Below are positions 1,538-62,505 of a stretch of DNA of 64,000 nt, piece by piece. The DNA comes from Neoechinorhynchus agilis (taxonomy: Eukaryota; Animalia; Acanthocephala), in contig CM121341.1 in assembly GCA_051530055.1 (NCBI GenBank), positions 12,192,784 to 12,256,783 of the forward strand, written 5' to 3'. Positions within the stretch are counted from its first letter, which is position 1, and every line of letters starts with the position of its first letter. The position numbers were made by a program, and so were the translations under genes. The notes beneath the pieces are model-generated. The model made no database searches and was not told the origin of the DNA. It was given only the letters and a program-made list of their open reading frames with translations.

Positions 1538-1941
1538 TAGCTTTTAAGGAACAGCGACTAATAGAATTTCCAAAATGAACGTCTTTTTGGTGTGGGCGTT
1601 TCGGTTAGAGTCGAGATGCTAAAAGAGCTATCCATCGGAATATAATGCCAAATATCACTCCGTCAGAAGTATTCAAAATATATTTGAAGTTTTAAAGGAT
1701 GTTAATTATATAGATACGCTCAATTCCGATTGGGTTTTAGTTGAATGTCGAAAATCCACTAGAAAGTAAGTCCGTTAGCAATAAGGCCTCCAATTGTAGA
1801 GGAAATTATAGAACTGATTAACTCTTCGCTGTTACACTCGCGTATCAATAAGGCAAATTATTTTCGAATAAAAGAAAACAAATTGCTTGCAATCCAATGA
1901 TTTAAGATTCTGTTCAAGATGTGAGTTATGCCGGGACGAAG

Positions 1942-2551
1942 TCAAGTAGAGATATGTGTGGAAATATTACTGAATTCACCAATAATGATAATATGTTCAA
2001 GACCAAGAGAGTGCAGATTTTCTACTTGTGAATCGATCTCCTGTGATGCCATCTGTAGATTGGCTGAGAGAGGACGATAGATACCGATAAATGTAAAATT
2101 TCGGCTGCCTGAGCGAAGTTTGAGAGAGAGCGTTGTGTGGATGTATTCTAAATATGGTGATTGGCAAGGAACTGAGGAGGAGCTCTCCGCAGGGAATGAA
2201 AATAGAGACTCCACCTCCTGTGTCATCGTCTTTGTACGTGTGTAAGGAAGTGTAGCCAAGAATTAAGGAGATGCCGGAATTGGAGGAGTGCAGCCATGTT
2301 TCCACAATTAACAAAAAGTCTGCGTTTGCAAAAGAGGCAAATGGCAAAACAGGATCTAGTTTAGGTAAAATACTTCTTTTGTTAGTGAAACGAACGGAGG
2401 AAAATGGTCGCTTGAAGGAACTTGAAAGGGGATGCAGTTTGCGAGAGTTGGCTGGTGGAAGAGTTCGATGGATACGTTTCTGAGCGGCTCTTGAGTTCCC
2501 GGTAATGTTTGATTCTGCTAACGTACGGCAAAGATTTTCGGAGGTATCCAA
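1942..2551 (-). mobile_element. APE endonuclease fragment of a CR1/L2-type LINE ORF2 (also 29521-30130)
   Basis: NKRSILPKLD, IVETWL, GGGVSIFI, IGIYRP, IIIIGEF motifs across two frames. Confidence 0.75.
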
Positions 2552-2618
2552 AAATTTACAGATGAATTCCGAAGGTATTTTTTGGCTGGTCTTAAGTAGA
2601 TATCAGGAGAGAGAAGAT

Positions 2619-3870
2619 TTGGCAAAATATTTGCAATAAAAGAAGAAAACCAAATGCTAATAATCGCATGACTTGGTCGCTATGACAACTTTTGATCAAT
2701 TTAATAAAATCAACCTTAGCTTTGAAAGTTTGGAAGAAGAAGCGACAAGTATAACTGCCCAAATTAATGCCTTTTCGGCGTGGTCGTCTTGGTTAAAACC
2801 GTGACGCGAAATGAGCGATTGCTGAAAAACATTGCCGAATGTCGCTCCGTCAGAAGTATTCAAATATATTTCAAGTTTTCAACTACACTAATTTAAAGCA
2901 GCTAACAATTGACTCCTACAGGTTTTAGTTCATTAGCGAATAACGAATCAGAGGAGATCGAAATCGTGATTGGAAGTTTTGAGTTTTATTAGGTAAGAAA
3001 ATGAGCGTTACTACTTCTCAAATATCTCTAAATTATATTATTTGCAAAGCAAATACATAACAATTTTAATGCTTTTAGTGCAAACCAAATGTTCGTCGAA
3101 GTATTCTCCTAAACATAGGATTTCTTGGGATGCCGTAAATGTGGTACACCCCCATTACATCGTTGGGTTATAGAAGGATTTCTCGGGATGCTGTAGTCTT
3201 TGTACAACCCAATCCTCAGTTGAAGGATTCTTTAAAACGAAGGATTTCTTGGGGCTTGAACGGTTAAATCGAACCTCGGATGCTATGCAAGCCTCTATTC
3301 AAAATGTCCACGCTAATTCGGAAAAGGGCGTAGACTCCATCTCGGACGTCACCGCAGGAAAATTTTATTTCTGACTAAAATTAAAAACAATTTCAGGTTT
3401 GAAACAATGGAGTCTGATTTTAACTATTCGGCAGCATAAATCTCCTAACTACTCAAAGAGATCATTGATAACACTAAATTTTCAACGATACAGAATTCCT
3501 CGAAAAGAAAATTAGTTGAAAAACGACGCATCCATTAATTTCCAAAAGAACACTCACGATCGTTGAGGCGCTAATACACTTCCACAATTCTTTGGGACGA
3601 ATGTAAAAATCAACCACCACCTCCGTAACCGCTCGATTCATCGGTCACAAAAAAAGAGCGATGCGAAAAACGTAAATGCAGCGATGTAAAGCAAACGACG
3701 ACTTGGAAGGCAAAAAAACGACAGAATTACAACTTTTTTTTGTTAATTTGGCGCGCGTTCAAATTTTTATCGTCATCTTTAATCGAAAAAATAAATTTGT
3801 GAAAAGTACTCATGTAATGTGCTTGGTCAGAGTGTTTTAAAATTAACATCAATTTTATTCTTTTCAAAAG
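2619..3870. repeat. Unclassified ~1.25-kb repeat module X (copies at ~13081-14348, ~30198-31449, ~47626-48893)
   Basis: Four near-identical copies, all ending TTCTTTTCAAAAGT; internal repeats of AGGATTTCTYGGG. Confidence 0.9.
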
Positions 3871-6800
3871 TGTCTGTTATTGTTTAGGTCGCATTTCGAA
3901 GAATGAGGGAGATCGTTAAAGACGAATGTATTTCGACCGATTGAGTCGGTCATTCTCAATTCAATCTAAAATAACATAGGGATTCGTCACAACACGTACA
4001 TGTGATTTTTTATTTGGACTTGGGACCCAGGAGAGCGCGAGCTTGTGATCCAATCGTTCGTTTTATCGTTTACTGCCTTCATATAGAAGCGAATCATTGT
4101 TTATTCTTAAATTTAAACTCAGTGACTGAATATATGAATTTTGTTGGTCTAATAATGCGATTAGAAAAAACCATCATTGAATCTTTTTTAACATCAAAAT
4201 GTTTGTTAAAGTACAAAACGTGCAATCACCACCGTCCGCAAAATTGGAGCTTCTCCCCTTCATCGGCTGTCGCTTTCACGCTAACAGCAGTGCCTCGTTG
4301 TACTGCGAGCGAGATATTTTGTCGCAGGAATACACCTGCTCGTGCGTCGCCCGTCGTTTCTCTCAATTTCTTCGAGATATCCTAGAGCAGGGTAAGTGCC
4401 GAGCTGCCAAGCGCTCCATACGTCTCTACTCCGATGGGGACAAAATAGTGGGCCTTTGCTAATTCTCTATATTTTCGTACCTTCCTGCCTTCCGCTGCAC
4501 TGGCTGCACCTCCAGGGATTTCGAGTTAGTAGGGAATGTTGCTTACTGCGAGGGTGTCCACAAACGTGGCGTCCCAGAGAAAACATTTGCTCACCCGCCA
4601 CGGAAAGACCGAAATGCCGTCAGGTCGACGACCGTCTAGCCGACAAAGATGGGCAGGATCCAAAATGTTGGGGAAGTTCGCCGTTCTCAACGCCCGAGAA
4701 ATTACGCTATTGATCTCAGAATGGCGTAAGAACCTTCCTCCTGACTTTCGGCAAACGAGACCGTGTCGCCCGAAAGCATCAACCAAAGACCCACATCGAC
4801 AGCGATGGGGTGTGCATATCGGGAGACCAAGTCTTAAGGACACTGCGATTCTCGTTACCTCATCAGTGAGAAGAGTTCCCACAGATGCCAAAGCAACAGC
4901 CTCCAACCACACCCCCGATTCTCGTGTCGAAACTGCTAACAATCTAGCTCGGACGACCCCATCGCGAGTACCTGAAAGTTGAGAGCTGTGAGCTCTCGCG
5001 ACGAGAGGTCTGTCCCAGATAGACTATCTGAAGCCATTCACGGGAACATGGTTAGCGCCTGTCTGCTTGCACCATTCTTCAACTGCCACCACAAAGTCTT
5101 GGTCAAGACAATACTTTCCCCTCAGAATTTTCTTTACAATTGGTTGACTCCCCTAATACGATCCAATAAAAGCGCCCTAATGTCCAATCCCCAAGATGAC
5201 ACAGGCATTGAAGCTTGTCGCCACGCCTCATCTGAGAGCTGGACATTTTAAATACGCTCGATACAAGCCTTCACCTTGCCGTCGAGCTTAGCCAATCCTT
5301 CCTTATGTTTGAAGAATGCTGCTGTTCGGGCCTTTTGTAATAATTTGGGGATAAAGAGTGCTTTCTTTATCAGAAATAACGCTTCTTGAACCGAGAGCGC
5401 GCTCACAGTATCGCACTCCAACGAAAGTTTTTGTTTGATACAGCGGATCTCATCTTCCACATTTGAATCAAAGACGCAACTACCCAGGAGGCTGAGTTGC
5501 TCTAGAGTCACGAGTTTCAGATCTGGAGCTACGGCCCGAACCCATCCATTAGCTCCTTTTCTTTGGCGGCATCTTCGATATTTAATAAAAGAATCTCACA
5601 CTTTCCAGGATTGAGCTCAATGCCCATTCTCGAAGTATCCCTAATCAGCGTCTCCAAATCGCGCAGTACAACGAAGGGATCATCTCCGAGCGTATCGTCA
5701 TGCAAGTACCAAGTGTTGAAGCTGGAATGGGGAGAGCGCGCTGTTGAATTTATTGTTAGGGTGAATGCGATTGGACCGAGAGGATCTCCTAGCTGCACTC
5801 CTCTTTTGACCCGTAAGCATTGAGAAAATACTGGAAGGCTTCTGGTGCGTGATCCCTAATTGTGCAGAACATGCTTTCTCTATTGAGAGAGTTAAAGGCA
5901 TTCTGAAAATCACACTTAAGAATCACGCATGGCTCTGAACTCCTCGTAGTAAAGTTTCGGAGCGTGTTGACAATAACTTGCGCCCCGCAGGATGTGCAGC
6001 AACCCAGTTGGACTGGGCGAAGTTGCTGCCCGGTTTTCTCTGTGATACGTTTACAGAGAATTTTTCCTGCAAGTCGGTTTATCGTCGAAGATACGGCGAT
6101 GGGTCGAGTCCCAATTTTTTTGAGGGCACATAATGATGCTCCGAAAAATAGGTTTTTTACAACGAGATTCAAATCCTCTCCAGTCAGGCGGTCGACTAAC
6201 CGAGATAGCGCATTTTTTAGGGAGAGTTGCTTCACCAGTTGTAAAGGACATCATGTCCTTAGGTGCTGAGACCTTAGCCCGTCAAGCCGATGACCCGAAC
6301 CATTTGCAAAAGATGATATGGCCTTTTTAATTCTGAAATTTGAGTGGGTGTCCTGTGTTGTATGGGAGGAGGTGGAATTTCAAAGCTACTACTGCATGGG
6401 TGTTTTGACCGGAGTATTTGTTGTGTCGCGTCGTCTCCTTGTGAAAAACTGTCAGATGATGACAATAACCGAACAGCCTCCCCGAACATCTCCGTTAACA
6501 AGCTTCGAAGAGACACGTTCAGTCTGGGATCGCTTTGAAAAACGGCAACGAAACCCTTCCTTCGTGCATCCCTTAAGAACCTCGCGAAATTTCATTTCGA
6601 AATTGTTAAATATCCGATCGAAGGAGGCCACTCTTTCTTTGATTGTTGATGTCAAAGACACCCCAGAATCATCACTGGTGCAAAGGACTAAGCGCGGGAA
6701 TGCGAAGAGCCGTGTCCATGATGGCGTACATTTTTTTTGGAGGCAATCGTTGAGCCCTTAAATGCTTTGGCGACCTGATATCGTGCGCCCTTTGGAATCC

Positions 6801-7491
6801 GTATCATGACGTTCCTGGGCAGTAACCGCACGATATCAGGTAATGAAATAGAGTCCGTGGTGATCTGAGAGGTCTTAGGAATAATCAGATCGGTTGATTG
6901 TGGTGGAGAACCAGACACCGCTACAGCGGAGATCCCGGAGACCATGGGCAAACAAAAACCCCAAATTGGTTAATTTAAAAGATTTACCGCAAACCGAACA
7001 CACCAGTAGAGACGCGTGGGAGCCTGGCAGCGTTGGTATTCTCAGGTTGAGCGCGATCGATAAGTGGCGCTTTCAAGGTGTCTACGTCATTGATTTGATG
7101 AATATAATTTAGGCCTGGTGTCCCGGTAGTCTTGGGCGTTTCCTTGGTCTTTTCACTTGGCTAATTTTGGACGGGCAAATTTCCGTCTTCATATTATTGT
7201 CTAGCGTCCAGGTTCCGGGCGAAGCGAGGAACGTGTCGTCCCCGAGCGAGGCGAGGTGACGGCATCGGTGCCGTCGGTGGTGGAGGCGTCGTCGGCGCTG
7301 GGGGCGGCATCAGTGTCGTCGGTGGCGGAGGCGGCATCGGTTTCGTCGATGGTGGAAAGCGACCATGACTATTCTCATTTTACAGCCTCCCTGAGTGTGT
7401 TTAGGCCGACAACCGGTCGGTTCAATTGGTCGAAATATATTCGTCCTTAACGATCCCCCTCGGGTGTCGACAAGCGACCTAAACAATGACA
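3871..7491 (-). mobile_element. CRE-like RLE non-LTR retrotransposon (family 1), near full length, frameshifted
   Basis: N-terminal CSVCGKSF..AHG..RC zinc finger; IRIPKGAR; TRPIAVS; ILKCDFQNAFNS; GDPLGP; WYLHD (degenerate YLDD); CRCGSLVDAFGRHGLVC knuckle; RRPDG..DAT..DT RLE; ends CGRW-TGA at 4228-4226. Confidence 0.9.
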
Positions 7492-14348: not shown

Positions 14349-14932
14349 TGTCTGTTATTGTTTAGGTCGCATTTCGAAGAATGAGGGAGATCGTTAAAGA
14401 CGAATGTATTTCGACCGATTGAGTCGGTCATTCTCAATTCAATCTAAAATAACATAGGGATTCGTCACAACACGTACATGTGATTTTTTATTTGGACTTG
14501 GGACCCAGGAGAGCGCGAGCTTGTGATCCAATCGTTCGTTTTATCGTTTACTGCCTTCATATAGAAGCGAATCATTGTTTATTCTTAAATTTAAACTCAG
14601 TGACTGAATATATGAATTTTGTTGGTCTAATAATGCGATTAGAAAAAACCATCATTGAATCTTTTTTAACATCAAAATGTTTGTTAAAGTACAAAACGTG
14701 CAATCACCACCGTCCGCAAAATTGGAGCTTCTCCCCTTCATCGGCTGTCGCTTTCACGCTAACAGCAGTGCCTCGTTGTACTGCGAGCGAGATATTTTGT
14801 CGCAGGAATACACCTGCTCGTGCGTCGCCCGTCGTTTCTCCCAATTTCTTCGAGATATCCTGGAGCAGGGTAATTGCCGAGCTGCCAAGCGCTCCATACG
14901 TCTCTACTCCGATGGGGACAAAATAGTGGGCC
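14349..14932 (-). mobile_element. 3' end of CRE-like family 1
   Basis: Matches 3871-4454 (offset 10478); HYFVPIGVETYG..QRGTAVSV..CGRW. Confidence 0.9.
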
Positions 14933-16850
14933 AAACTATATAGTGTTTGTCCCCTTTTGGAATACATAATACATTCCTTCTTCATATCGAGTTGTTTGAC
15001 CAATGTTTCTATATTGTAATTCCACCTATCATTTATGCAAGGAATTTCTATATATCGTGTGTCTGCATTCGTTGAAGATCCGATATCCCGATTTTTTGTA
15101 GGTTCCCTTCCGATCATTTGTTGAGTATCTTTCAATGTTCTTAACATTAATTTCTTTGGATAGCCACCACTTTTAAATATATTCCATAATCTATCGAGTT
15201 CGTTATTGAGGCAATTCAAGTTTGAGCTATATCGGTATGCTCTGATGACTAGTGATCGGAATCTCGATAATTTGTATTTGTGTGGTTGAGCTGAGATCCA
15301 AGGTACTATTCGATGCGGGACACCCTGTTTGATATAGACCGATGTGGAGAAAGTGTTATCATAGTTTCTTTTGACTTGTACATCGAGAAATGGTAAAAAA
15401 CCACAATCTTCTTTTTCGCATGTCCATTGAATATGGGAATCCTCTTCGTTTAGTTCCTGTTGAAGTTGGACAGCTGTCCATCTGTCTTGGTCCAATGTGA
15501 TAATGGTGTCGTCTACATATCGACACCAGAATTCTATGCCTCTTAACTTGGTCAAATTTGACTCCTCCCAATGTCTCATGTAAAGTTCAGCAAGAACTGG
15601 CTAAAGTGGGCTTCCCATTGTCAGCCCATCTATTTGATCATAGTTCTGTCCTTCGAACTCAAAATTAGAAAATTTTGTGCAGAAGAGAAGTAATTTCCGC
15701 CAGTCGGTAGCTGACAACTTCCATAGCTTATCATTCTCCATAAGTAGTGGGATGGCAAGTTCGATGGTATCTTCCATCGGTATTCTCGTGAACAGAGATA
15801 CAACATCCGCTGTTACCATGATACATGAATCGTTAATTGTCATTCTATTCAGCCGATTGATGAAGTCCAGCCCAGAGATGATAACATTGTCTGAGTTGGG
15901 TAGGAGTATTTTTAGAAAACTAGCAATCGCTTTGGATAGTTTATAATTGTAGGCTGAATGTGCTGCTACGATTGGTCTAGCTTTCATTACATCTTAGGTG
16001 TTCTCGCATTCACAGATCTTAAATTCTTAGTTTATCTCAGGTATGAGCTTCTGTTTCATCAATCTGGGCATGAAATCATTAAGTTCCTTTTCACGTTTCG
16101 CTGTTGGAGAGTTGTCGAGTATCTTGAATTCTTGTCCTTTCAATATATCCTCTCCTAGATAGCGAAATTGATCGAGATTGACAATATAAAAACCATAGCC
16201 CTTGTCAATTTTCATTATTCGTAAGTTACTGTAACGTTTTAAGTTGACTGCCCAATCGATAATCCTCTTCGTTATATTAGAATCAAGTTAACTTTTATTT
16301 TGTACTGCACTTGTATATCCTCTCTCAAATTTCCACATTGGTAAGTTGTCAATCTTCTTGGATAAATCATAGACCATCTCTTCCGTCTTCACTCTACATC
16401 GAAGTTTGTTGACTCTATTGGTCGGGACAAAATCTGGACCAAAAGAAAGAAATCCCAGTACGGATTTTTGTAGCAGGATGCCCGAAACATTGATAACATT
16501 AGTTAAATTGTTTGTAGGAACGAAAAAATAGCCTTACGTAAGGTTCACCAGTTTCTTGACATGACGATTCTCAATAGTCATTCGTTCTGTTTGTTGAGTA
16601 TTGTTTTCTATCTCGAGTGTCACTATGTTTGACCATTCATAATCTGTAAGGGAACGTAAATTATTCGTGCATATATCATATTGGTCTTTTAAACATTTGT
16701 TCTCGTTGGATAGTTCTCTTAGTGTGTTGTTTAGTAGCCATTTTTGCATGGACTTCTGGGTTCTTGAATTGTCAAATCCCAGTGCTGTTGACCTTAATTT
16801 CATAAAGGACGGTGACACATCATGCAGATTCGCCATAAATCTGCTTTGTT
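14933..16850 (-). mobile_element. Penelope-like element RT, 3' end (GIY-YIG region) missing
   Basis: DKGYGFYIV, ARPIVAA..YKLSK, TADVVSLFTRIP, QIDGLTMGSPL*PVLAELYM, WCRYVDD, LPFLDV; one in-frame TAG at 15603-15601; N-terminal part frameshifted. Confidence 0.9.
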
Positions 16851-19499: not shown

Positions 19500-19960
19500 T
19501 CGAAAATAGAATCCGGGATTCACCGGCAAATTGGGAAGTATATTTATCCTCCTCCTCCTCAAACCACGAACGAGCGCATTGTCCGCATAGACAATGCTCG
19601 AAACAGTCCATAATTGCAAAGAACGTATTGCTCCGAATCAGTAACAGTTTCCAAGCACACGCAACAATCTGCGTCTTTGCTGAAATCGCATCGTAAATTG
19701 GATGTCTTTTAAAGGTTTTCGTAACATTCGAAGTAGTGCGATTTTTTTTGGTTTGAATCATCGGAATCCAGTGCATAAGAAAAGCAAATCAAACAAACAA
19801 GTCCGTGCTTTAATGAGCAATTTTGATCGCATGAACTGTTTGCGGTATAATTTGGGCAAATTCCATCGGAGATTAACATTGGAGGTCTCATTATATCACA
19901 AAATTTTGAATCATTGGGTATTCTGCGGGCCATTGAAGTTTCTTGGAATGTTGCGCTCAT
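19500..19960 (-). pseudogene. Makorin-like RING/C3H zinc-finger E3 ligase fragment
   Basis: CPNY..C..NC..KHG then Cys-His motif CLIC..LD..D..Q..H..C, then SKDADCCVCLE, DCFEHCLCGQCARSW and PICR, in makorin order; one in-frame TAA and two frameshifts. Confidence 0.75.
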
Positions 19961-20001
19961 TGTTGAAATGTCAAATTAAGGGACCGGCAATTCTCTTTTT
20001 C

Positions 20002-21060
20002 AGCGTTCAACTTCTGATGAGACAAGCTTCTTTGCCTGTGTCATCTGGGGGATTGGGAATTCGGGCACTAGTCGACCTTGCTTTGCCGGCCTTTCTTGGA
20101 TCGTTTGAGGGGAGCCTACCAGTCTCGAAGAACATTTTGAAAGAAAAGTTTTGTCTTGACCGGGATTTCGTGGTGGCGGTTGAGGAATGGTGCCAGCAGA
20201 CAGGCGCTAACCAAGTTCCCGTGAATGGCCTCAGACAGTCGATCTGGGACGGACCTCTTGTCGCGAGAGCTCACAGCTCTCTTCTTTCAGGTTCTCGCGA
20301 TGGGGTCGTCCGAGCTAGACTGTTGGCAGTTTCAACACGAGAATCTGGGGCGTGGTTGGAGGCTGTTCCTCTGGCATCTGTGGGAACTCTTCTTACTGAC
20401 GAGGTGACGAGGATCGCAGTATCCTTAAGACTCGGTCTCCCGATATGCACGCCCCATCGCTGTCGATGTGGGTCTTTGGTTGATGCTTTCGGGCGACACG
20501 GTCTCGTCTGCAGAAGGTCAGCAGGAAGGTTTTCACGCCATTCTGAAATCAATAACGTAATTTCTCGGGCGTTGAGAACGGCGAACTTCCCGAACATCCT
20601 GGAACCCGCCCACCTCTGCAGACTAGACGGCCGTAGGCCCGATGGAATTTCGGTCTTCCCGTGGCGGGAGGGCAAATGCCTTCTCTGGGACGCCACGTGT
20701 GTGGACACCCTCGCAGCCAGCAACATCCCCTACTCCCTCGAAATCGCCGGTGGTGCCGCCAGTGCAGCGGAAGGGAGGAAGGTACGAAAATATATGCAGC
20801 TATCGAGGGCTCACTATTTTGTCCCCTTTGGGGTAGAGACGTATGGAGCGCTCGGCAGCTCGGCACTCTCTCTGCTCAAGGATCTCTCGAAGAAATTGAG
20901 AGAGGCAACCGGAGACTCAAGAGCAGGCTTATTTCTTCGACAAAATATCTCGCTGGCAGTACAACGGGGCAATGCTGCCAGCGTGATGGCGACGGTCGAG
21001 GAAGGACAAAAGCTGGAATTTGGTGGGAGGTGGTGAATGTAAAGAAAAGTAACCAAATAT
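20002..21060 (+). mobile_element. CRE-like family 2, 5'-truncated (RT C-terminal region plus intact RLE)
   Basis: QASLPVSSGGLGIR, CRCG..RHGLVC, SRHSEIN, RRPDG, LWDATCVDT, AEGRKVRKY, FVPFGVETYG, QRGNAAS, GGRW-TGA at 21036. Confidence 0.9.
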
Positions 21061-28914: not shown

Positions 28915-29257
28915 TTCGGTCGTTATTTTTTCGTTGAATAAAACGAACATCGTTGTCTACCCACTACAGCTATGACAACTTTTGATCAATTCATTAAAAT
29001 CACCCTAAGTTTCCATAGCTTTTAAGGAACAGCGACTAATGGAACTTCCAAAATGAACATCTTTTCGATGTGGGCGTTTCGGTTAGAGTCGAGATGCGAA
29101 AAGAGCTATCCATCGGAATATAATGTCAAATATCACTCCGTCAGAAGTATTCAAATGTAGATCAACACAAAAAGCAACGCGCTCTGTTTTCTAGTTGTAC
29201 TCCATGCACCATGCGTGCAAATCGATTGGTGGACCTCTGACGTACTCGCCACACAAA

Positions 29258-32200
29258 TATATTTGAAGTTTTAAAGGATGTTAATTATATAGATACGCTC
29301 AATTCCGATTGGGTTTTAGTTGAATGTCGAAAATCCACTAGAAAGTAAGTCCGTTAGCAATAAGGCCTCCAATTGTAGAGGAAATTATAGAACTGATTAA
29401 CTCTTCGCTGTTACACTCGCGTATCAATAAGGCAAATTATTTTCGAATAAAAGAAAACAAATTGCTTGCAATCCAATGATTTAAGATTCTGTTCAAGATG
29501 TGAGTTATGCCGGGACGAAGTCAAGTAGAGATATGTGTGGAAATATTACTGAATTCACCAATAATGATAATATGTTCAAGACCAAGAGAGTGCAGATTTT
29601 CTACTTGTGAATCGATCTCCTGTGATGCCATCTGTAGATTGGCTGAGAGAGGACGATAGATACCGATAAATGTAAAATTTCGGCTGCCTGAGCGAAGTTT
29701 GAGAGAGAGCGTTGTGTGGATGTATTCTAAATATGGTGATTGGCAAGGAACTGAGGAGGAGCTCTCCGCAGGGAATGAAAATAGAGACTCCACCTCCTGT
29801 GTCATCGTCTTTGTACGTGTGTAAGGAAGTGTAGCCAAGAATTAAGGAGATGCCGGAATTGGAGGAGTGCAGCCATGTTTCCACAATTAACAAAAAGTCT
29901 GCGTTTGCAAAAGAGGCAAATGGCAAAACAGGATCTAGTTTAGGTAAAATACTTCTTTTGTTAGTGAAACGAACGGAGGAAAATGGTCGCTTGAAGGAAC
30001 TTGAAAGGGGATGCAGTTTGCGAGAGTTGGCTGGTGGAAGAGTTCGATGGATACGTTTCTGAGCGGCTCTTGAGTTCCCGGTAATGTTTGATTCTGCTAA
30101 CGTACGGCAAAGATTTTCGGAGGTATCCAAAAATTTACAGATGAATTCCGAAGGTATTTTTTGGCTGGTCTTAAGTAGATATCAGGAGAGAGAAGATTTG
30201 GCAAAATATTTGCAATAAAAGAAGAAAACCAAATGCTAATAATCGCATGACTTGGTCGCTATGACAACTTTTGATCAATTTAATAAAATCAACCTTAGCT
30301 TTGAAAGTTTGGAAGAAGAAGCGACAAGTATAACTGCCCAAATTAATGCCTTTTCGGCGTGGTCGTCTTGGTTAAAACCGTGACGCGAAATGAGCGATTG
30401 CTGAAAAACATTGCCGAATGTCGCTCCGTCAGAAGTATTCAAATATATTTCAAGTTTTCAACTACACTAATTTAAAGCAGCTAACAATTGACTCCTACAG
30501 GTTTTAGTTCATTAGCGAATAACGAATCAGAGGAGATCGAAATCGTGATTGGAAGTTTTGAGTTTTATTAGGTAAGAAAATGAGCGTTACTACTTCTCAA
30601 ATATCTCTAAATTATATTATTTGCAAAGCAAATACATAACAATTTTAATGCTTTTAGTGCAAACCAAATGTTCGTCGAAGTATTCTCCTAAACATAGGAT
30701 TTCTTGGGATGCCGTAAATGTGGTACACCCCCATTACATCGTTGGGTTATAGAAGGATTTCTCGGGATGCTGTAGTCTTTGTACAACCCAATCCTCAGTT
30801 GAAGGATTCTTTAAAACGAAGGATTTCTTGGGGCTTGAACGGTTAAATCGAACCTCGGATGCTATGCAAGCCTCTATTCAAAATGTCCACGCTAATTCGG
30901 AAAAGGGCGTAGACTCCATCTCGGACGTCACCGCAGGAAAATTTTATTTCTGACTAAAATTAAAAACAATTTCAGGTTTGAAACAATGGAGTCTGATTTT
31001 AACTATTCGGCAGCATAAATCTCCTAACTACTCAAAGAGATCATTGATAACACTAAATTTTCAACGATACAGAATTCCTCGAAAAGAAAATTAGTTGAAA
31101 AACGACGCATCCATTAATTTCCAAAAGAACACTCACGATCGTTGAGGCGCTAATACACTTCCACAATTCTTTGGGACGAATGTAAAAATCAACCACCACC
31201 TCCGTAACCGCTCGATTCATCGGTCACAAAAAAAGAGCGATGCGAAAAACGTAAATGCAGCGATGTAAAGCAAACGACGACTTGGAAGGCAAAAAAACGA
31301 CAGAATTACAACTTTTTTTTGTTAATTTGGCGCGCGTTCAAATTTTTATCGTCATCTTTAATCGAAAAAATAAATTTGTGAAAAGTACTCATGTAATGTG
31401 CTTGGTCAGAGTGTTTTAAAATTAACATCAATTTTATTCTTTTCAAAAGTGTCTGTTATTGTTTAGGTCGCATTTCGAAGAATGAGGGAGATCGTTAAAG
31501 ACGAATGTATTTCGACCGATTGAGTCGGTCATTCTCAATTCAATCTAAAATAACATAGGGATTCGTCACAACACGTACATGTGATTTTTTATTTGGACTT
31601 GGGACCCAGGAGAGCGCGAGCTTGTGATCCAATCGTTCGTTTTATCGTTTACTGCCTTCATATAGAAGCGAATCATTGTTTATTCTTAAATTTAAACTCA
31701 GTGACTGAATATATGAATTTTGTTGGTCTAATAATGCGATTAGAAAAAACCATCATTGAATCTTTTTTAACATCAAAATGTTTGTTAAAGTACAAAACGT
31801 GCAATCACCACCGTCCGCAAAATTGGAGCTTCTCCCCTTCATCGGCTGTCGCTTTCACGCTAACAGCAGTGCCTCGTTGTACTGCGAGCGAGATATTTTG
31901 TCGCAGGAATACACCTGCTCGTGCGTCGCCCGTCGTTTCTCTCAATTTCTTCGAGATATCCTAGAGCAGGGTAAGTGCCGAGCTGCCAAGCGCTCCATAC
32001 GTCTCTACTCCGAAGGGGACAAAATAGTGGGCCTTTGCTAATTCTCTATATTTTCGTACCTTCCTGCCTTCCGCTGCACTGGCTGCACCTCCAGGGATTT
32101 CGAGTTAGTAGGGAATGTTGCTTACTGCGAGGGTGTCCACAAACGTGGCGTCCCAGAGAAAACATTTGCTCACCCGCCACGGAAAGACCGAAATTCCGTC

Positions 32201-32869
32201 AGGTCGACGACCGTCTAGCCGACAAAGATGGGCAGGATCCAAAATGTTGGGGAAGTTCGCCGTTCTCAACGCCCGAGAAATTACGCTATTGATCTCAGAA
32301 TGGCGTAAGAACCTTCCTCCTGACTTTCGGCAAACGAGACCGTGTCGCCCGAAAGCATCAACCAAAGACCCACATCGACAGCGATGGGGTGTGCATATCG
32401 GGAGACCAAGTCTTAAGGACACTGCGATTCTCGTTACCTCATCAGTGAGAAGAGTTCCCACAGATGCCAAAGCAACAGCCTCCAACCACGCCCCCGATTC
32501 TCGTGTCGAAACTGCTAACAATCTAGCTCGGACGACCCCATCGCGAGTACCTGAAAGTTGAGAGCTGTGAGCTCTCGCGACGAGAGGTCTGTCCCAGATA
32601 GACTATCTGAAGCCATTCACGGGAACATGGTTAGCGCCTGTCTGCTTGCACCATTCTTCAACTGCCACCACAAAGTCTTGGTCAAGACAATACTTTCCCC
32701 TCAGAATTTTCTTTACAATTGGTTGACTCCCCTAATACGATCCAATAAAAGCGCCCTAATGTCCAATCCCCAAGATGACACAGGCATTGAAGCTTGTCGC
32801 CACGCCTCATCTGAGAGCTGGACATTTAAAATACGCTCGATACAAGCCTTCACCTTGTCGTCGAGCTTA
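29258..32869. repeat. Segmental duplication copy 2 (APE fragment, module X, CRE family 1 3' 1.4 kb)
   Basis: Matches 1679-5290. Confidence 0.95.
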
Positions 32870-33860
32870 ACCACGACGAACGACGCAATCGAAGTTAACT
32901 TGATTGAGGAGCATACCGTGACGAATATGGAATTCACGGGAATATTAAATGCAACTTCACAACCAATGAAAGGATGCTCTTTCATGAAATAGATACTAGG
33001 GATTTTGATCGATTTGTTATTAACAATATTCAGCTTATAAATAAAATTATAGGTCACGTAAAAATTTATCATTGTTCAGTAACTTTATTTCTCATCGGAT
33101 TAAGTTTGAAGTTCAGAATTATTAGGAAGAATTAAAGGTGTTGATTAATTTGCTAAATTTCAAAAATGTAGGGCCCAACTTTTATAAAAATCTAGTACAA
33201 CCTTTCAAAAATGCTAATTGTGAGATCTTTAATTGTCGTCATTTATCCTTTGGAAAGGTATAGAAGATTTTCCGTCGGCTATTACGCTTATTTAAAGTCG
33301 CTTAAACCGTTTTGAGCAGCATGCGTAATAATTTGCACGGAATTCGAAACTTTCGTCTTAGTAACTTTTAATACTTCTTGCAATATGGTTGGCTCCCTGA
33401 ATTAACACGATCTAACCTTTATAAAACAGATTACCGTTTGGCATTGCTCGGGGAAGCTTAATCGAGGATGATCACTATTCAAAAACTAAGACATGATCAA
33501 AAGTTATGCAAATTAAAAACATACGAACTTTAGCTATACTTTGACCAATTCAAAAGTCGCCTCGTTATTATTATGCTCCGTAGGCATTAAGATCAACGGA
33601 AACTTCTTTGCGGTTTTCGATTTCATTTGATTAAATGTCAGAGACAAAATCAATTTATGACCTAGAAAGTTTACAAAAACTTTCCAAAAATCTACATGCA
33701 GACTTTATTTTATTTTTAACACTCCCTGCCGGTCAAAATTTTAACGATCTTTTATCCGTCTTAAACTTTTCGCTCAATCCGATTCGAGTGCGGAATTAAC
33801 ACTTTAATAACCTAAAAAAGTTCGACGAAAAGGATCAAATATTGAGTGCAATGAAACTAA

Positions 33861-34310
33861 AAAACTGACTATAATTCGCGAATCAGAAGACGACAATTCA
33901 TCATCTCCTTAAATCGGATGTCACTGTCTTTTGTTCATCATTTTCGCAGTTAAGAAATATTTTAAAGAAATTGCACAAATTCTGTGTTGCAAAGCAATTA
34001 AAAAACTGATTACAATAATTAACGAATCAGAAGAAGACAAATCATCACCTCGTTAAATCGGACGTCCCTATATTTTGTTCATCATTTTCGCTCTTAAGAA
34101 ACATATTAAAGAAATTGAATAAATTCTGTGTTGCGAAGAAACTGAAAAGCTGACCACAATAATTTTCGAATCAGAAGACAAATCATCATCTCTAAATCGG
34201 ATGCCCTTTTTTTCATTATTTCCGTACTTAAGAAATATTTTAAAGAAATTGAATTAATTCTGCGTTGTAAAGAAATCAAAAATCTGACTACAATAATTTT
34301 AGAATCAGAA
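33861..34310. repeat. Diverged ~140-bp tandem repeat, ~3.3 units (first unit also at 63871-64000)
   Basis: Units start AAAA(A/G)CTGA at ~33861, 34001, 34145, 34278; shared AATCAGAAGA, TAAATCGGA, TTAAGAAA, AAAGAAATTG. Confidence 0.8.
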
Positions 34311-34311
34311 G

Positions 34312-44230: not shown

Positions 44231-47168
44231 GATAATTGCGCAGAGACACAAAGGTGTGCGCAATTACGACTAAATCTCAAGCGATTGTAGAAAAGGATTG
44301 TAATGGAGGTTCTTAAACAATGAATGATTGTAACCAGTATGAGTTAATATCTTCCCTTCCACCTTTACCTCCACAATCCTTCAGTGGTGGCCAATCTGAC
44401 TCAGTATCTCCAATCGTCTCCCTGATCGGCACCTTACCACAAAACATATTAAAAAGGATCCCAAAAGGCGCGAGATACCAATGTGCGAGGTTCTATTCGA
44501 CACTGCTCTCGAAGTGCGTCTCTGAGCCGATCGAAGCTAACTACTTGCGGGTATTCGCCTTTCCTCGAATAATCTTGAACACAAACCGCGACTCGGACAG
44601 TAATCTCACCTGTACGATCAAAAAGCGACTCACGGATTATGACAATTTATTTGGGATAAGCTTGAGTAGATCTATGGAGTCGCCTTCAATCGAAGCTAAA
44701 CGCCCAAAATGCTCAGGCCAACGTTCTCTCCTTGCCAAGAGAGTCTCTGCAAAACTGGCTGACTTCGATGTACGAGGTGCAGTTCAGTTGCTAAGTTCGA
44801 CGGACTCATTTGCTAGAAGTGATCAGTGCACACTTGATGCACTTAGAGGTAAACACCCCGTCGGCAATCCCCCTTCCTTACCTGATGTCCCTACTGAGGC
44901 CAGTTTCCAATGCGATATCTCAGAGTTAAGAAAAGCAATCGCCTCCTTCCCGAACGGCTCTGGACATGGTCCCGATGGTCTTCGCCCTCAACATTTGAAA
45001 GACATGCTCAGTTTAGGAGCAGCAGCTGCTGGATCAACTCTTGAAGCATCCCTAAGGGATTTCACGGAACAAATCATCAACGGTATCCCACCTCCCGAGG
45101 CGACAAGCTTCCTCTTCTCAGCCACACTATGCGCCTTATCCAAAACGAATGGTGACATTCGTCCGATTGCTGTGGGATGTACAATACGACGTTTGGCTGC
45201 TAAATTATTGTGCAAAAGATTTTACGATGACGTTGGACGTCAACTCCGTCCCTTTCAACTAGGGTGCTGCACTCCATGTGGAGCTGAATCGATCGTCCAT
45301 GCGACAAGATCTTTCACAGACAATCGAGCACATTGAACGCAGTGCTTAAGGTGGATTTCAGCAACGCCTTTAATTCAGTCGATCGCTCAGCCCTACTGAA
45401 AACAGTAGCTGTTAGCCTTCCTGGAGCATATCGTTATTTTCAGATCGCATATGGCACCAAGACCCCTCTATTCTTCGACCACCACACCATTTGGTCAGAA
45501 ACCGGTGTACAACAGGGATATCATCTGGGTCCGATTGGGTTTGCTTTGATAACGAACGATATCATCCGAATGCTTAACTCAAAACTAAACGTGTGGTATC
45601 TAGACGATGCGACAATTGGTGGAGATCCGGCAGTGGTCCTAGATGATTTGAAGAGGCTGATCATCGCCACATCGAAAATCGTATTAACTGTGAACTCGTC
45701 GAAATGTGAGCTAATGCTAATCAATGCAAACCAATCGGATAGAGATGCAATTTACAGCTCCTTTCTTGATATCGCTCCGGGAATACGACTCATTGAACCG
45801 GATCGTTTCTCTCTTCTTGGTAGCTGTGTCCTTAGTTCGAACGTTGAGAGGGAAATCGATGAAGTATTGCCTGATTTGGAACGTTTGTGCAGTCGAACGT
45901 GTGAGCTTGGCTCTCATGAAGCCCTATTCCTTTTGAGGAATTGTTTATGCATGCCAAAAATGCTGTATAAGTTAAGAGCGGCTCCATACTTCGAGCACTC
46001 ACATAAGCTTCGACAGATTGATTTAATGCTGAGGAGACAACTACAACGCATCACGAACTCCCAGCTTTCAAATGAGGCATGGCAACAAGCAATACTGCCT
46101 ATAGAATACGGTGGATTGGGCCTTCGGAGCGTAGTCGAATTAGCACTTCCAGCTTTCCTCGCATCGGTCACCAAAACAAAAAATATAACCAATGTTATAT
46201 CGCAGCAGACCGATATGTCGGCGGATGATGTCGAACGTCGTGGAGTTTCCTCGTGGCTCATCAAGACCGATCTAGATCAAGTTCCAAAAAATGGCCACGA
46301 ACAGCCTGTTTGGGATAAACCCCTCGTAGAGAGAGCCTATAATAAATTGAAAGGGCATCTCGATTCGGTGTCTCAAACACGGCTAGTGGCGAGCTCTTCT
46401 AAGGAGTCTGGCGCTTGGTTAAATGCGCTGCCAATCAGACCTTTAGGCACACACCTTGACGACGAGTCGGTGAGGGTGGCTATCGGGTTGAGGCTTGGCA
46501 TACCTCTATGCATACCCCACAAATGTCGATGTGGTTCAGCAGTTGACGAGTCAGGTAGACATGGCCTTCTTTGTAAACGATCTGGTGGTCGATTGGCGAG
46601 ACACGAGAAGTTAAACAACATTATTAGCAGGACGCTCCACTCATTAAATGTCCCGACTCTATTAGAGCCGAACCACCTGTGTCGCTCAGATGGCAAACGT
46701 CCCGATGGGATGACCATATTCCCGTGGAAAGAGGGAAAATGCCTTATCTGGGACGCCACATGCGTCGATTCGTTAGCACCCTCCAACCGAAGTGATGCAA
46801 TATCAGGACCGGGAGGAGCTGCGACGGCGGCCGAGAGGAGGAAGACAGCGAAATACGCTGAGCTGGAAAAGACACCTATTTCTTCCTTTCGGTGTGGAGA
46901 CAAATGGGGCGTTTGGAGTTTCGGCAAACAAATTTTGCGCGGAGATAGGCCGACTACTCATAAAAGCCAGCGGAGATCACAGAATAAGGAACTACCTCAT
47001 CCAACGCTTGAGTGTGGCTATTCAACGGGGCAACACGGCAAGCGTGATAACAACGGCCCAATGGGTGGCGCGTAATGAGGGATATAATGAAAACAAAAAG
47101 ATTGAATTATAAATTTGTTAGAGCTGCTTAATAGTTCTTTTCGTAGACAAAAATAAATAAATAAATAA
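44231..47168 (+). mobile_element. CRE-like family 3, near-intact ORF with two frameshifts
   Basis: 44320-47112: KRIPKGAR, SGHGPDGLRPQHL, IRPIAVG, LKVDFSNAFNS, GVQQGYHLGP, WYLDD, GGLGLR, CRCG..RHGLLC, KRPDG, DATCVDS, K..KY; frameshifts at ~45333 and ~46876; (AAAT)n at both ends. Confidence 0.92.
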
Positions 47169-49460: not shown

Positions 49461-52400
49461 AGAAACAAAATTTGATAAATCATGCGGCCAAAAAAATCAA
49501 GTAGAATTCGCACAAGAATTTAGGTCTTAAAGATTTTGTTATTGAAAATGGACACCTGGGCGGAATGTTGTAATAATAAAGAAAAAGATCTTTATTTCTG
49601 AGAGTTTTACCCGCGCTAAAAGCTAACAAGCAATTCCCAAGGAAGCCGTAAAACAGCGGAAGCTCTCGCATATAAAGATTTTCGTTTTATCATTACAACA
49701 TCCCGCCAATTGTCCATTTTTTAAAACAAAGTTTGATAAATCATGCGGCAAAAAAAATCAAGTAGAATTCGCACAAGAATTTAGGTCTTAAAGATTTTGT
49801 TATCGAAAATGGACACTTGGACGGAATGTTGTAATGGAAAAAAGATCTTTATTTCTGAGAGTTTTACCCGTGCTAAAAGCTAACAAGCAATTCCCAAGGA
49901 AGCCGTAAAACAGCGGAAGCTCTCGCATATAAAGATTTTCTTTTTATCATTACAACATTTCGCACAATTGTCCATTTTTTAAAAAAATTTGACAAATCAT
50001 GCGGCCAAAAAAATCAAGTAGAATTCGCACAAGAATTTAGGTCTTAAAGATTTTGTTATCGAAAATGGACACTTGGACGGAATGTTGTAATGGAAAAAAA
50101 GATCTTTATTTCTGAGAGTTTTACCCGTGCTAAAAGCTAACAAGCAATTCCCAAGGAAGCTGTAAAACAGCGGAAGCTCTCGCATATAAAGATTTTCTTT
50201 TTATCATTACAACATTTCGCACAATTGTCCATTTTTTAAAACAAAATTTGATAAATCATGCGGCCAAAAAAATCAAGTAGAATTCGCACAAGAATTTAGG
50301 TCTTAAAGATTTTGTTATCGAAAATGGACACTTGGACGGAATGTTGCAATGGAAAAAAAGATCTTTATTTCTGAGAGTTTTACCCGTGCTAAAAACTAAC
50401 AAGCAATTCCCAAGGAAGCCGTAAAACAGCGGAAGCTCTCGCATATAAAAATTTTCTTTTTATCATTACAACATCCCGATCAATTGTCCATTTTTTAAAA
50501 CAAAATTTGATAAATCATGCGGCCAAAAAAATCAAGTAGAATTCGCACAAGAATTTAGGTCTTAAAGATTTTGTTATCGAAAAAATGGAAACTCATGGAA
50601 TGTTGTAATGATAAAGAAAAAGATCTTTATTTCTGAGAGTTTTACCCGTGCTAAAAACTAACAAGCAATTCCCAAGGAAGCCGTAAAACAGCGGAAGCTC
50701 TCGCATATAAAGATTTTCTTTATCATAACAACATCCCGATCAATTGTTCATTTTTTAAAACAAAATTTGATAAATCATGCGGCCAAAAAATCAAGTAGAA
50801 TTCGCACAAGAATTTAGGTCTTAAAGATTTTGTTATCGAAAATGGACACTTGGATTTGAATGTTGTAATGGAAAAAAAGATCTTTATTTCCGGGAGTTTT
50901 ACCCGTGCTAAAAGCTAACAAGCAATTCCCAAGGAAGCCGTAAAAACAGCGGAAGCTCTCGCATATAAAGATTTTCTTTTTATCATTACAACATTTCGCA
51001 CAATTGTCCATTTTTTAAAACAAAATTTGATAAATCATGCGGCAAAAAAATCAAGTAGAATTCGCACAAGAATTTAGGTCTTAAAGATTTTGTTATCGAA
51101 AATGGAAACCTGGGCGGAATGTTGTAATGATAAAGAAAAAATCTTCATTTCCGGGAGTTTTACCCGTGCTAAAAGCTAACAAGCAATTCCCAAGGAAATA
51201 AAATGAAGTGCTCTTTTATAAAGATTTTCTTTATCATTACAACATCCCGATCAATTGTCCATTTTTTAAAACAAAATTTGATAAATCATGCGGCCAAAAA
51301 TCAAGTAGAATTCGCAGAAGAATTTAGGTCTTAAAGATTTTGTTATCGAAAATGGACACTTGGACGGAATGTTGTGGCATTGGAAAAAAAGATCTTTATT
51401 TCTAAGAGTTTTACCCGTGCTAAAAACTAACAAGCAATTCCCAAGGAAGCCTTAAGACAGCGGAAGCTCTCGCATATAAAGATTTTCTTTTTATCATTAC
51501 AACATTTCGCACAATTGTCCATTTTTTAAAACAAAATTTGATAAATCATGCGGCCAAAAAATCAAGTAGAATTCGCACAAGAATTAGGTCTTAAAGATTT
51601 TGTTATCGAAATGGACACTGGACGGAATGTTGTAATGGAAAAAAAAGATCTTTATTTCCGAGAGTTTTTTACCTGTGCTAAAAGCCGGAGCATTGCACCC
51701 AAGGAAGCTGTAAACAGCGGAAGCTCTCGCATATAAAGATTTTCTTTATCATTACAACATTTCGCACAATTGTCCATTTTTAAAACAAAATTTGATAAAT
51801 CATGCGGCCAAAAATCAAGTAGAATTCGCACAAGAATTTAGGTCTTAAAGATTTTGTTATCGAAAATGGACACTTGGACGGAATGTTGTAATGGAAAAAA
51901 AGATCTTTATTTCCGAGAGTTTTAGCCGTGCAAAAAACTAACAAGCAATTCCCAAGGAAGCCGTAAAACAGCGGAAGCTCTCGCATATAAAGATTTTCTT
52001 TTTATCATAACAACATCCTGATCAATTGTCCATTTTTTAAAACAAAATTTGATAAATCATGCGGCCAAAAAAATCAAGTAGAATTCGCACAAGAATTTAG
52101 GTCTTAAAGATTTTGTTATCGAAAATGGACATTTGGGCGGAATGTTGTAATGATAAAGAAAAAATCTTCAATTCCGAGAGTTTTAGCCGTGCAAAAAACT
52201 AACAAGCAATTCCCAAGGAAGCCGTAAAACAGCGGAAGCTCTCGCATATAAGGATTTTCTTTTTATCATTACAACATCCCGATCAATTGTCCATTTTTTA
52301 AAACAAAATTTGATAAATCACGCGGCCAAAAAAATCAAGTAGAATTCGCACAAGAATTTAGGTCTTAAAGATTTTGTTATCGAAAATGGACACCTGGGCG

Positions 52401-56114: not shown

Positions 56115-56898
56115 TACGAAATATCAGTTTTAACGTTTCGCCACGATCAAAGGTTTGCGAATTAATCGATAATAAACCATCATATTTAAAGGATACGATA
56201 GCTAGCGATTGTAGGACGGACAGGCTCTGGAAAAAGCTCAATTCTGAACATGATAGAAAGAATGGGTATCGTGGAAGGGATCGTTATTTTGGATGGAGTG
56301 GATACATCGCTGTTAAATTTAAGAGAACTGCGACGGAAAATATGTATAATTCCTCAGGTGATCTTTTCAAACACCAAATTCGAGACAAGGTCGCTAATAA
56401 TATTTTAGAAACCAATATTCATCAGTGGAACCTTAAGAGACAATCTTGACACTTTCAAAGAGGTCAGTGATGAATACATATGGACTATTCTTAAAAGCGT
56501 ATGGATCAAAAAACGAAGTTCGAATCCATTTCTCCGCGCTTAGGTACAAATGGACGAAGTAATAAAGCGAATTGTTGGCGACGAAGGATTGGACGGTTTT
56601 GTGCGTGGATCCGGTTTCGGGGAACGCTTCAGTTTCGGACAACTTCAACTTCTCAGTATGGCTCGTGCAATCATTCGAAAAAGAAAACTTGTTATCATGG
56701 ACGAGGCCACATCTAATCTGGAAGCTGAAACCGAAAAAATAATTCAAAGAGTTATTAGACACGAATTAGGTCATTGATGAAGGTCGAATCGTGGAAATCG
56801 GAAATCCTGTCGAATTAGCAATGAACAAAGCGTCGAGGTTCAGAATGTTAGTCATCGAGGACGGTCTTCGTCCAGAAAGACTGTATCAATCCTTCTGA
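56115..56898 (+). pseudogene. Inverted partial copy of ABCC NBD2 including the terminal exon but lacking the H-loop segment
   Basis: Introns of 49, 51 and 45 nt restore SK-LAIVGRTGSGKS, IPQ-KPIFISGTLRDNLD, FSFGQ, MDEATS; deletion at 56767/56768; last exon VIDEGRIVEIGNP..TGA 56770-56898. Confidence 0.85.
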
Positions 56899-57063
56899 AA
56901 GCTCAAACGCCATAAAAACTAAAGTACCACCGCTGTTCATTATTTTTCTTAAGCATCACATTTTGTTCTTTAAAAGTAAGCAGTCCATGTTTATTAGAAG
57001 GATGAGATTAGCTTTCAGTTTTACGGAGACGTTACACACTTCATCCACAAAAAAATCACTGAC

Positions 57064-58020: not shown

Positions 58021-58106
58021 TCCACAGCCGGTCCGTCCTACAATCGCTAGCTATCGTATCCTTTAAATATGATGGTTTATTATCGATTAATTCGCAAACC
58101 TTTGAT
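58021..58106 (-). pseudogene. Third short copy of the NBD2 intron and Walker A start
   Basis: ATCAAAG-GTTTGCG..GATAG-CTAGCGATTGTAGGACGGAC duplicates the segment at ~57678-57753. Confidence 0.85.
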
Positions 58107-58424
58107 ACTCCGAACCTCTACCAAAGTTTTTCTCATAAAAAAGCAGATCTTCGCCTAAAAAGATGACGATCTTGGGTTCCCGAGTCAAATGAAAACTCAT
58201 ATTGTGTGTGCGTGAGTTTGTGACCTTTTTTTACATTCAAATTGATAATGACTGATTTAATCAGTTCAAATATATATGATTGACTTTAACGATCCCCTCA
58301 AAATAATAAATTTTAATGATCTATTTTTCACTCGTGTTACTTTAGCTAAATCAAAATTAAGAAACAATTCATAAGAACCATTTTGTAAAAAACGAGAATT
58401 CTATTTCCATTATTTTTATCATAC

Positions 58425-61474: not shown

Positions 61475-61555
61475 TAATTAATTACTTTAATTTTTTGCGA
61501 TATAAAAACATGAATAATTAATCATAGATGGAAAATAATACGGGATAACCTAGCT

Positions 61556-62505
61556 CTGCTGTTAGCGTGAAAGCGACAGCCGAGGAAGGGGAGAAGCTCC
61601 AATTTTGCGGACGGTGGTGATTGCACGTTTTGTACTTTAACAAACATTTTGATGTTAAAAAAGATTCAATGATGGTTTTTTCTAATCGCATTATTAGACC
61701 AACAAAATTCATATATTCAGTCACTGAGTTTAAATTTAAGAATAAACAATGATTCGCTTCTATATGAAGGCAGTAAACGATAAAACGAACGATTGGATCA
61801 CAAGCTCGCGCTCTCCTGGGTCCCGAGTCCAAATAAAAAATCACATGTACGTGTTGTGACGAATCCCTATGTTATTTTAGATTGAATTGAGAATGACCGA
61901 CTCAATCGGTCGAAATACATTCGTCTTTAACGATCTCCCTCATTCTTCGAAATGCGACCTAAACAATAACAGACACTTTTGAAACGGGGCAATGCTGCCA
62001 GCGTGATGGCGACGGTCGAGGAAGGACAAAAGCTGGAATTTGGTGGGAGGTGGTGAATGTAATATCGAAATTTGGTTACTTTTCTTGTCTGTTATTGTTT
62101 AGGTCGCATTTCGAAGAATGAGGGAGATCGTTAAAGACGAATGTATTTCGACCGATTGAGTCGGTCATTCTCAATTCAATCTAAAATAACATAGGGATTC
62201 GTCACAACACGTACATGTGATTTTTTATTTGGACTCGGGACCCAGGAGAGCGCGAGCTTGTGATCCAATCGTTCGTTTTATCGTTTACTGCCTTCATATA
62301 GAAGCGAATCATTGTTTATTCTTAAATTTAAACTCAGTGACTGAATATATGAATTTTGTTGGTCTAATAATGCGATTAGAAAAAACCATCATTGAATCTT
62401 TTTTAACATCAAAATGTTTGTTAAAGTACAAAACGTGCAATCACCACCGTCCGCAAAATTGGAGCTTCTCCCCTTCATCGGCTGTCGCTTTCACGCTAAC
62501 AGCAG
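61556..62505. repeat. 420-bp inverted repeat of the CRE family 1 3' end (61556-61975 / 62086-62505), 110-bp spacer
   Basis: The arms are near-perfect reverse complements; the spacer contains the CRE family 2 3' end (matches ~20964-21041). Confidence 0.93.

Follow-up and report, generated by a model that had tools for sequence, protein, structure and literature searches.

Does a 70-nucleotide (nt) inverted repeat form the ends of the retrotransposon that it encloses, or did it come to flank the element by another route? The question is raised by a 64,000-nt stretch of DNA from the acanthocephalan Neoechinorhynchus agilis (the window; GenBank assembly GCA_051530055.1, contig CM121341.1, positions 12,192,784 to 12,256,783 of the forward strand), in which the remains of a retroelement without long terminal repeats (a non-LTR element), here called E1, lie between two oppositely oriented copies of one motif. 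An earlier reading made from the letters of the window alone (the sequence-only reading) had proposed that E1 might be an element of the restriction-like endonuclease (RLE) type with inverted termini. Our analysis points to a different answer: a dead retroelement is probably flanked by two pieces of a separate repeat family, which we call Z, in opposite orientation, with the arms as the outer ends of these pieces and not as termini of the RLE element.

The inverted repeat around E1

A repeat search delimits the arms to 3875-3944 and 7422-7491 of the window, 70 nt each, 83% complementary and spaced 3477 nt apart. Aligned without gaps, they match at 58 of 70 positions, and the 56 of 68 matches previously counted over slightly narrower coordinates are reproduced. 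Within the window, the arm-versus-arm comparison has a BLAST E-value of 3e-16, and its Smith-Waterman score of 80 compares with about 31 for the highest background score. The existence of the 70-nt inverted repeat is thus confirmed, at a level far above chance. Seven of its 12 mismatches fall inside one 12-nt patch (arm positions 19-30) and the remaining five are all transitions. Similarity breaks off abruptly at the inner edges (3944 and 7422) and likewise at the outer edges.

The two arms differ in copy number. The left motif has five copies with 100% identity over 80 nt, starting at 3871, 14349, 31450 and 62086 on the plus strand and at 61975 on the minus strand, so that every copy listed in the sequence-only reading was found again. 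The right motif has a single copy in the window, and both arms are present at one locus only. A motif scan of metagenome contigs gave 0 matches. Rfam, run on the whole window at gathering thresholds and on both element ends at E ≤ 10, returned nothing relevant; among the families absent from this search are the hepatitis delta virus (HDV)-like, hammerhead and twister ribozymes and the R2 element. Neither arm shows a structured motif when folded on either strand (z-scores +0.4 to -1.35).

The enclosed retroelement

The minus strand between the arms, from about 7340 to 4226, is collinear at the protein level with two paralogues in the window (44320-47075, 338 + 580 aa; 19702-21036, 444 aa), both of which are better preserved than E1. 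The domain order is an N-terminal zinc finger (CxxC...H), a reverse transcriptase (RT) and a C-terminal CCHC motif with an RLE region. Pfam RVT_1 matches the E1 fragments weakly and the intact paralogue 45333-47075 with E=3e-11. Searched against the PDB, a profile of 28 family sequences matched R2 proteins along the stretch from RT to RLE domain (E=3e-23), its positions 3-675 aligning to residues 419-1131 and 640-1352 of R2 chains, RLE domain included; the profile also matches LINE-1 RTs. The motifs CRCG..H....C and RPDG..WD are near-invariant in the family alignment. No Exo_endo_phos (apurinic endonuclease, APE) domain was matched in the open reading frames (ORFs) scanned from this set of elements (the E1 pieces, E3 and E4; Table 1), and Pfam gives no further domain in the E1 pieces, neither a tyrosine recombinase nor a GIY-YIG domain. 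To judge from its sequence, E1 is a dead R2-like non-LTR element with an RT and a restriction-like endonuclease, and the earlier identification of an RLE-type retrotransposon between the arms is supported by the profile match.

The reading frame of E1 is broken by about 15 frameshifts or stops, a number to which assembly errors may have contributed, since the assembly was built with an assembler meant for error-prone long reads. In a protein search with the C-terminal ORF, the best relatives, about 50% identical, were unnamed proteins of lepidopteran, tardigrade and metagenomic origin, and an exact look-up of ten window ORFs in the searched collection found none of them. The R2-like family appears to be undescribed so far and not site-specific, and to represent a known type of element.

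E1-type coding sequence also occurs in a minus-strand ORF of 291 aa (14704-15579), in which the last ~77 E1-type residues (tblastn) continue in frame into the C-terminal portion of another RT. This second RT has a YVDD motif and is, by eye, putatively Penelope-like; it has no Pfam match.

Element boundaries from relatives

A stitched N-terminal translation of E1 matched four N. agilis proteins at 49-80% identity, which gave four loci of the same assembly (L002-L005). These carry same-family copies, and repeats of the window are 95-100% identical to pieces of them. Six further family 3' ends were found in the N. agilis loci, three of them E1-type (L004 13594, L003 19333 and L005 15523; 89-91% identical to E1 near the C-terminus). 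The three E1-type ends agree with E1 at 53-56 of 60 positions up to window positions 4207-4199 and at 12-20 of 60 beyond, so these nearest relatives end about 20-27 nt past the stop codon, without Z. The two E3-type ends (window 21059 and L005 7957) have different flanks and agree past the stop codon for exactly 23 nt, beyond which they diverge. Altogether, the family 3' ends, six in the N. agilis loci and two in the window, lie about 5-40 nt past the stop codon. Because the identity of the relatives drops at 4199-4207, the 328 bp at 3871-4198, which include the left arm, constitute a separate repeat, Z, outside the canonical element.

On the 5' side, the ORF starts within about 3 nt of the element boundary in L004 (10018) and L002 (about 10000). 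The L004 copy is identical to E1 at 38 of 42 positions from CCGATG (7341) inward and at 14 of 60 upstream, and the L002 copy likewise starts at its own ATG. The shared ORF start is the ATG at 7338-7336 (MPPPPPTT...). Compared in this way, E1 would be an element almost without untranslated regions (UTRs), with only a few bases before the ORF and about 25 nt after the stop. The right arm had been placed at the 5' end of the E1 ORF, which is not correct: the ATG common to the relatives lies 84 nt inside the inner edge of the arm, the intervening sequence is in a different frame with stops, and the 60-codon frame that runs through the arm is a separate short frame. One degenerate unit of the tandem repeats at the ORF start lies upstream of the ATG, which places the true 5' edge of E1 somewhere within 7367-7491. 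Between these repeats and the right arm lie 54 nt (7368-7421) for which the sequences upstream of the relatives' copies offered no significant match.

Neither arm motif is present in L002-L005, and no complex inverted repeat surrounds the element in eight relatives (L001-L004 and L006-L009). In L004 and L005, sequence upstream of the copies appeared to resemble the motif in places, but it scored within the null distribution and was dismissed. At one locus pair of a distant relative (L008/L009, from ENA assemblies), (TAA)n at 3360-3390 upstream faces (TTA)n at 7268-7292 downstream; these inverted trinucleotide microsatellites may be a product of chance in AT-rich DNA.

The family has the traits of insertion by target-primed reverse transcription, namely 5'-truncated copies, a defined 3' end and an empty site. 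The more distant element E4 splits a sequence found uninterrupted in a duplicate at 28905, which gives a filled/empty pair; AATA stands at both junctions, and E4 has no inverted repeat around it. A 76-nt 3' fragment (L003 19258-19333) is a very short 5'-truncated E1-type copy. The flanks of nine family 3' junctions show no consensus target. We rejected a role for the arms as the target site of a site-specific element, since the 5'-cut copies are not followed by the right arm and the family flanks lack a consensus.

Repeat Z and the copying of its junction

Z contains no ORF and has no Rfam match, and a concatenated protein query (RT middle, N-terminus, six-frame Z and the right-hand segment) returned no further N. 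agilis proteins and nothing for Z. A sliding Smith-Waterman comparison of Z with the window gave one clear outlier besides the known copies, the diverged member Z3 (score 62, background maximum 31), which is set among exon fragments of an ATP-binding cassette (ABC) transporter and has no E-family protein match near it. Z was not found in 84 kb of other N. agilis loci. On these comparisons Z is a repeat family of its own, small and unclassified.

The sequence-only reading had taken the recurrence of the left motif at other 3' ends of the family as a sign that the motif travels with the element. The flanks of these copies tell otherwise. Three left-arm copies share the full flank of module X, the repeat that adjoins Z on the left, a fourth keeps 9 nt of X, and the fourth and fifth face each other as the arms of a 423-nt palindrome. 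The five copies are therefore DNA-level duplicates of one X–Z junction and not independent insertions. The window is rich in other segmental duplicates, 98-99.8% identical. As the same reading had noted for a copy at 48893, one module X lacks the motif; this copy ends at 48895 on the same terminal base, with a T-run next. Since the left-arm copies are DNA duplicates, L002-L005 lack the motif and Z3 lies apart from any RLE element, the motif probably does not travel with the element. A new end architecture of the RLE element is likewise unsupported, the copies not being independent, Z3 being unlinked and same-family copies lacking the arm-bearing segments. A shared outer flank and an occurrence unlinked to the element had been named beforehand as observations that would speak against inverted termini, and this is largely what was found: the copies share their outer flank or, in one case, mirror such a copy in the palindrome, and one Z copy is unlinked to the RLE element.

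The differences between the duplicates 1676-5294 and 29255-32873, six in 3.6 kb, all lie within the last 860 nt, a clustering that suggests gene conversion or a mosaic origin rather than uniform decay. Differences among the Z copies are also patchy and ignore the edges of Z, the flank included, so that no constraint on Z can be deduced from them; DNA duplication accompanied by conversion would produce such a pattern.

The palindrome that holds two of the Z copies (61553-62508) consists of near-perfect 423-nt arms and a 110-nt spacer, which contains a C-terminal fragment of an E3-type ORF followed by the last 16 nt of that element, inverted. Its origin could lie in a fold-back duplication, in a template jump or in faulty assembly of the long reads.

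How the arms came to flank E1

We favour a model, the simplest one, in which target-primed reverse transcription would have placed E1 inside a Z element whose ends, of about 70 bp, were inverted repeats before the insertion. The host would have been a small unit of roughly 400-480 bp, resembling a miniature inverted-repeat transposable element (MITE) or a foldback element, and the insertion would have left 328 bp of it on the left side of E1 and 70-150 bp on the right. Copying of the X–Z–E1 junction as DNA, several times over, would have followed in a region rich in highly similar segmental duplicates, and it is this copying that would make the left arm appear to travel with the element. The composite that the sequence-only reading had offered as an alternative comes close to this model. 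In agreement with a MITE-like host, Z and the right-hand piece each have one of the inverted repeats at the outer edge, and we infer that both once formed one element with an inverted repeat at either end.

Several observations weigh against this model. Copy (d), at 62086, ends exactly at the arm and is flanked by other sequence. The outer 32 nt and a partner arm are missing from Z3, an intact solo Z element with both arms was not seen, and a MITE-like host should have left several two-armed copies at different loci, of which no second one was found in the window or the 84 kb inspected outside it, which is a small sample. There is no convincing target-site duplication, be it around the composite, where the sequence-only reading had seen none either, or around E1 or module X; the flanks outside the arms, TGTC and TATC, match at 3 of 4 bases, and TGTC also stands at copy (d) and so may belong to the unit. 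Moreover, the 5' edge of E1 is less certain than its 3' edge, a tandem unit that reaches 7367 leaves just 54 nt to the right arm, and the right arm could be part of an E1-specific leader, 5' leaders of subfamilies of long interspersed nuclear elements (LINEs) often being unrelated.

Three other histories were weighed. The two Z pieces might be independent and never have belonged to one host, the right arm being a 70-bp Z fragment beside the E1 5' end. Such a fragment would have arisen by severe truncation of a Z copy, or else during integration, if the second DNA end had also served to prime on a Z-type 3' end, much as in twin priming. The sharp stop of similarity after 70 nt looks like truncation, the 76-nt fragment in L003 shows that very short 5'-truncated retro-copies occur, tail-to-tail and inverted arrangements recur in the window (X against Z; the palindrome 61553-62508) and Z3 has no partner arm. 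We nevertheless regard this history as unlikely, because the chance of placing the right arm within about 100 nt of the E1 5' end is well under 1% in a 64-kb window, retro-copying of Z is not established and the outer edges of the two arms coincide within 4 nt. It is improbable in turn that the arms are genuine termini of a young E1 subfamily that gained a 5' leader of 150 nt and a 3' trailer of 355 nt, complementary to each other over their outermost 70 nt, and that moves as the unit 7491-3871, the left-arm-only copies then being 5'-truncated retro-copies. Such termini would account for the coincidence of the outer edge of the repeated unit (3871) with that of the inverted repeat (3875), for copies that stop at different internal points (equivalents of 5294, 4560, 4454 and 4293) as 5' truncation would have it, and for the differing outer flank of copy (d), where a template jump to the 3' end of an RNA could have created the junction with the 16-nt E3 3' tail; that the 5' edge of E1 is not pinned down also leaves room for them. 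Set against this are the common flank of the copies (X in three, 9 nt of X in a fourth), which marks them as DNA duplicates, the three nearest relatives that end without Z, the existence of Z apart from E1, the restriction of both arms to one locus, the lack of RNA structure or a family match in the arms and the heavy decay of E1. In its specific form, a young R2-like subfamily that moves as 7491-3871 with 70-nt complementary RNA extremes serving as a panhandle or a shared protein-binding site, the idea is more improbable still.

Lowest in our estimate stands 3' transduction, in which an E1 master upstream of Z would have produced read-through transcripts carrying Z, with a right arm unrelated to mobility. 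Z does begin exactly where the elements of the relatives end, and it is independent of E1. However, the flank outside Z is common to the copies, so there is no sign that an E1+Z unit ever retrotransposed, and both the end of the unit at the edge of the inverted repeat and the inverted arm on the 5' side are left unexplained. We keep to flanking Z pieces as the most probable source of the arms, with insertion of E1 into a Z element as the simplest history behind them.

Comparison with known systems

The E1 family resembles R2 (R2Bm and R2Tg; PDB 8gh6, 9dou and 9nl3) in having a single ORF with a zinc finger, an RT, a CCHC motif and a PD-(D/E)XK-type endonuclease, and also in its 5'-truncated copies and one insertion with an empty site. 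In contrast to R2, it uses neither ribosomal DNA nor another fixed target at the nine 3' junctions, its UTRs measure a few to about 40 nt, and Rfam detected neither an HDV-like ribozyme nor the R2 3' element in it. The single-ORF, RLE-bearing architecture is common to E1 and the CRE clade of trypanosomatids (CRE1/CRE2, SLACS and CZAR), the label that the sequence-only reading had given to the element. Targeting of the spliced-leader RNA gene is the classic trait of CRE elements; E1, by contrast, has no spliced-leader context, no spliced-leader RNA reaching the Rfam threshold in the window and the flanks of the nine 3' junctions differing from each other. Nor does E1 resemble DIRS or Penelope-like elements, because the ORF between the arms encodes an RT plus RLE and is collinear with R2.

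In Xenopus, the LINE Tx1L sits inside the inverted-repeat element Tx1D. The arrangement at the N. agilis locus is similar in that a non-LTR element lies within a unit bounded by inverted repeats, giving a composite that appears to have terminal inverted repeats of its own; it differs in being a single instance, with no sign of site-specific targeting of Z and no intact empty Z. Genie 2 of Giardia lamblia, a non-LTR element of the RLE lineage, reportedly has inverted flanking repeats of up to ~170 bp, which are said to be on all copies, whereas here they occur at one locus and the relatives lack them. If this report holds, the statement in the sequence-only reading that RLE elements are not known for inverted termini was too strong, and inverted termini on E1 would have a precedent. 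Twin priming of L1 likewise offers a route, at the time of integration, to an inverted segment on the 5' side of a non-LTR insertion. However, it inverts an internal upstream part of the same RNA and not a copy of the 3'-terminal 70 nt, and the arms here are only 83% identical.

Other features of the window

The features discussed above are collected in Table 1.

Table 1 Coordinates of E1, repeat Z and related features in the window
Feature	Position	Strand	Remarks
Module X, separate repeat	2618..3870	+	Right end adjoins Z in three copies; stands without Z at 48895
Repeat Z, 328 bp, non-coding	3871..4198	+	Adjoins 3' end of retroelement; absent from same-family copies elsewhere
Left arm of 70-nt inverted repeat	3875..3944	.	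Outer end of repeat Z
E1, core of predicted degenerate R2-like RLE non-LTR retroelement	4199..7341	-	ATG 7338-7336, stop 4228-4226
Tandem units (spacings 9/18/27 nt), Pro/Thr-rich ORF start	7255..7367	-	One degenerate unit upstream of ATG
54 nt between coding repeats and right arm	7368..7421	-	Either E1 5' leader or host-repeat sequence
Right arm of 70-nt inverted repeat	7422..7491	.	Sole window copy of right-arm variant
Z copy (b)	14349..14676	+	X flank shared; E1 part cut at 14932
E3, same-family comparator, 84% nt identity to E1	19702..21059	+	Ends 23 nt past stop, without Z
Z copy (a)	31450..31777	+	Inside 3619-bp duplicate of 1676-5294, 6 differing positions
E4, more distant family (~40-50% aa identity)	44350..47155	+	Clean 5'-truncated insertion, empty site 28905
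Z3, diverged third member of Z family	58169..58303	-	Aligns to Z positions 33-162, past the 70-nt arm
Z copy (c)	61648..61975	-	9 nt of X flank kept; one arm of 423-nt palindrome
Z copy (d)	62086..62413	+	Other palindrome arm; sole copy with a different base directly outside the arm

The ABC-transporter exon fragments extend over 56115-58530 on the minus strand, and one of them has a Walker A motif and a weak PF00005 match. The region contains an inverted duplication (56115-56767 and 57131-57784), and pieces 98-100% identical to it lie at L005 12987-13436, another chromosome locus. Descent of the arms from such an exon is not supported, given that frame-corrected peptides had no ABC_tran match and tblastn found nothing; the best match of the right arm in the window outside its own family is a 30-nt exon stretch (58481-58510; score 33, 99th percentile 24.5), which is weak and unexplained.

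Two tandem arrays were also seen. A 259-bp satellite (49463-55020, 21.6 copies, 92% matches) directly follows the module X that lacks Z and a short A/T-tailed insert, and a 144-bp tandem repeat (33847-34311, 3.3 copies, 80% matches) belongs to the module after the E1 copy cut at 32873. Among the loci of the relatives, L005 10001-11404 (protein P0124) combines SNF2 and ResIII Pfam matches with retroelement-derived sequence and is probably a chimeric prediction.

Implications

We conclude that the locus is probably an ordinary nested and duplicated transposon cluster and not a new kind of element. Were the arms true termini, they would imply a new way of defining or joining ends in target-primed reverse transcription, an architecture that is not established for RLE non-LTR elements. 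The analysis also carries a caution, in that a copied junction in duplicated, transposon-rich DNA can mimic a motif that travels with an element. Finally, it provides two modest by-products, a first description of what would be a near-UTR-less R2-like family in an acanthocephalan, and a small, as yet unclassified repeat family, Z.

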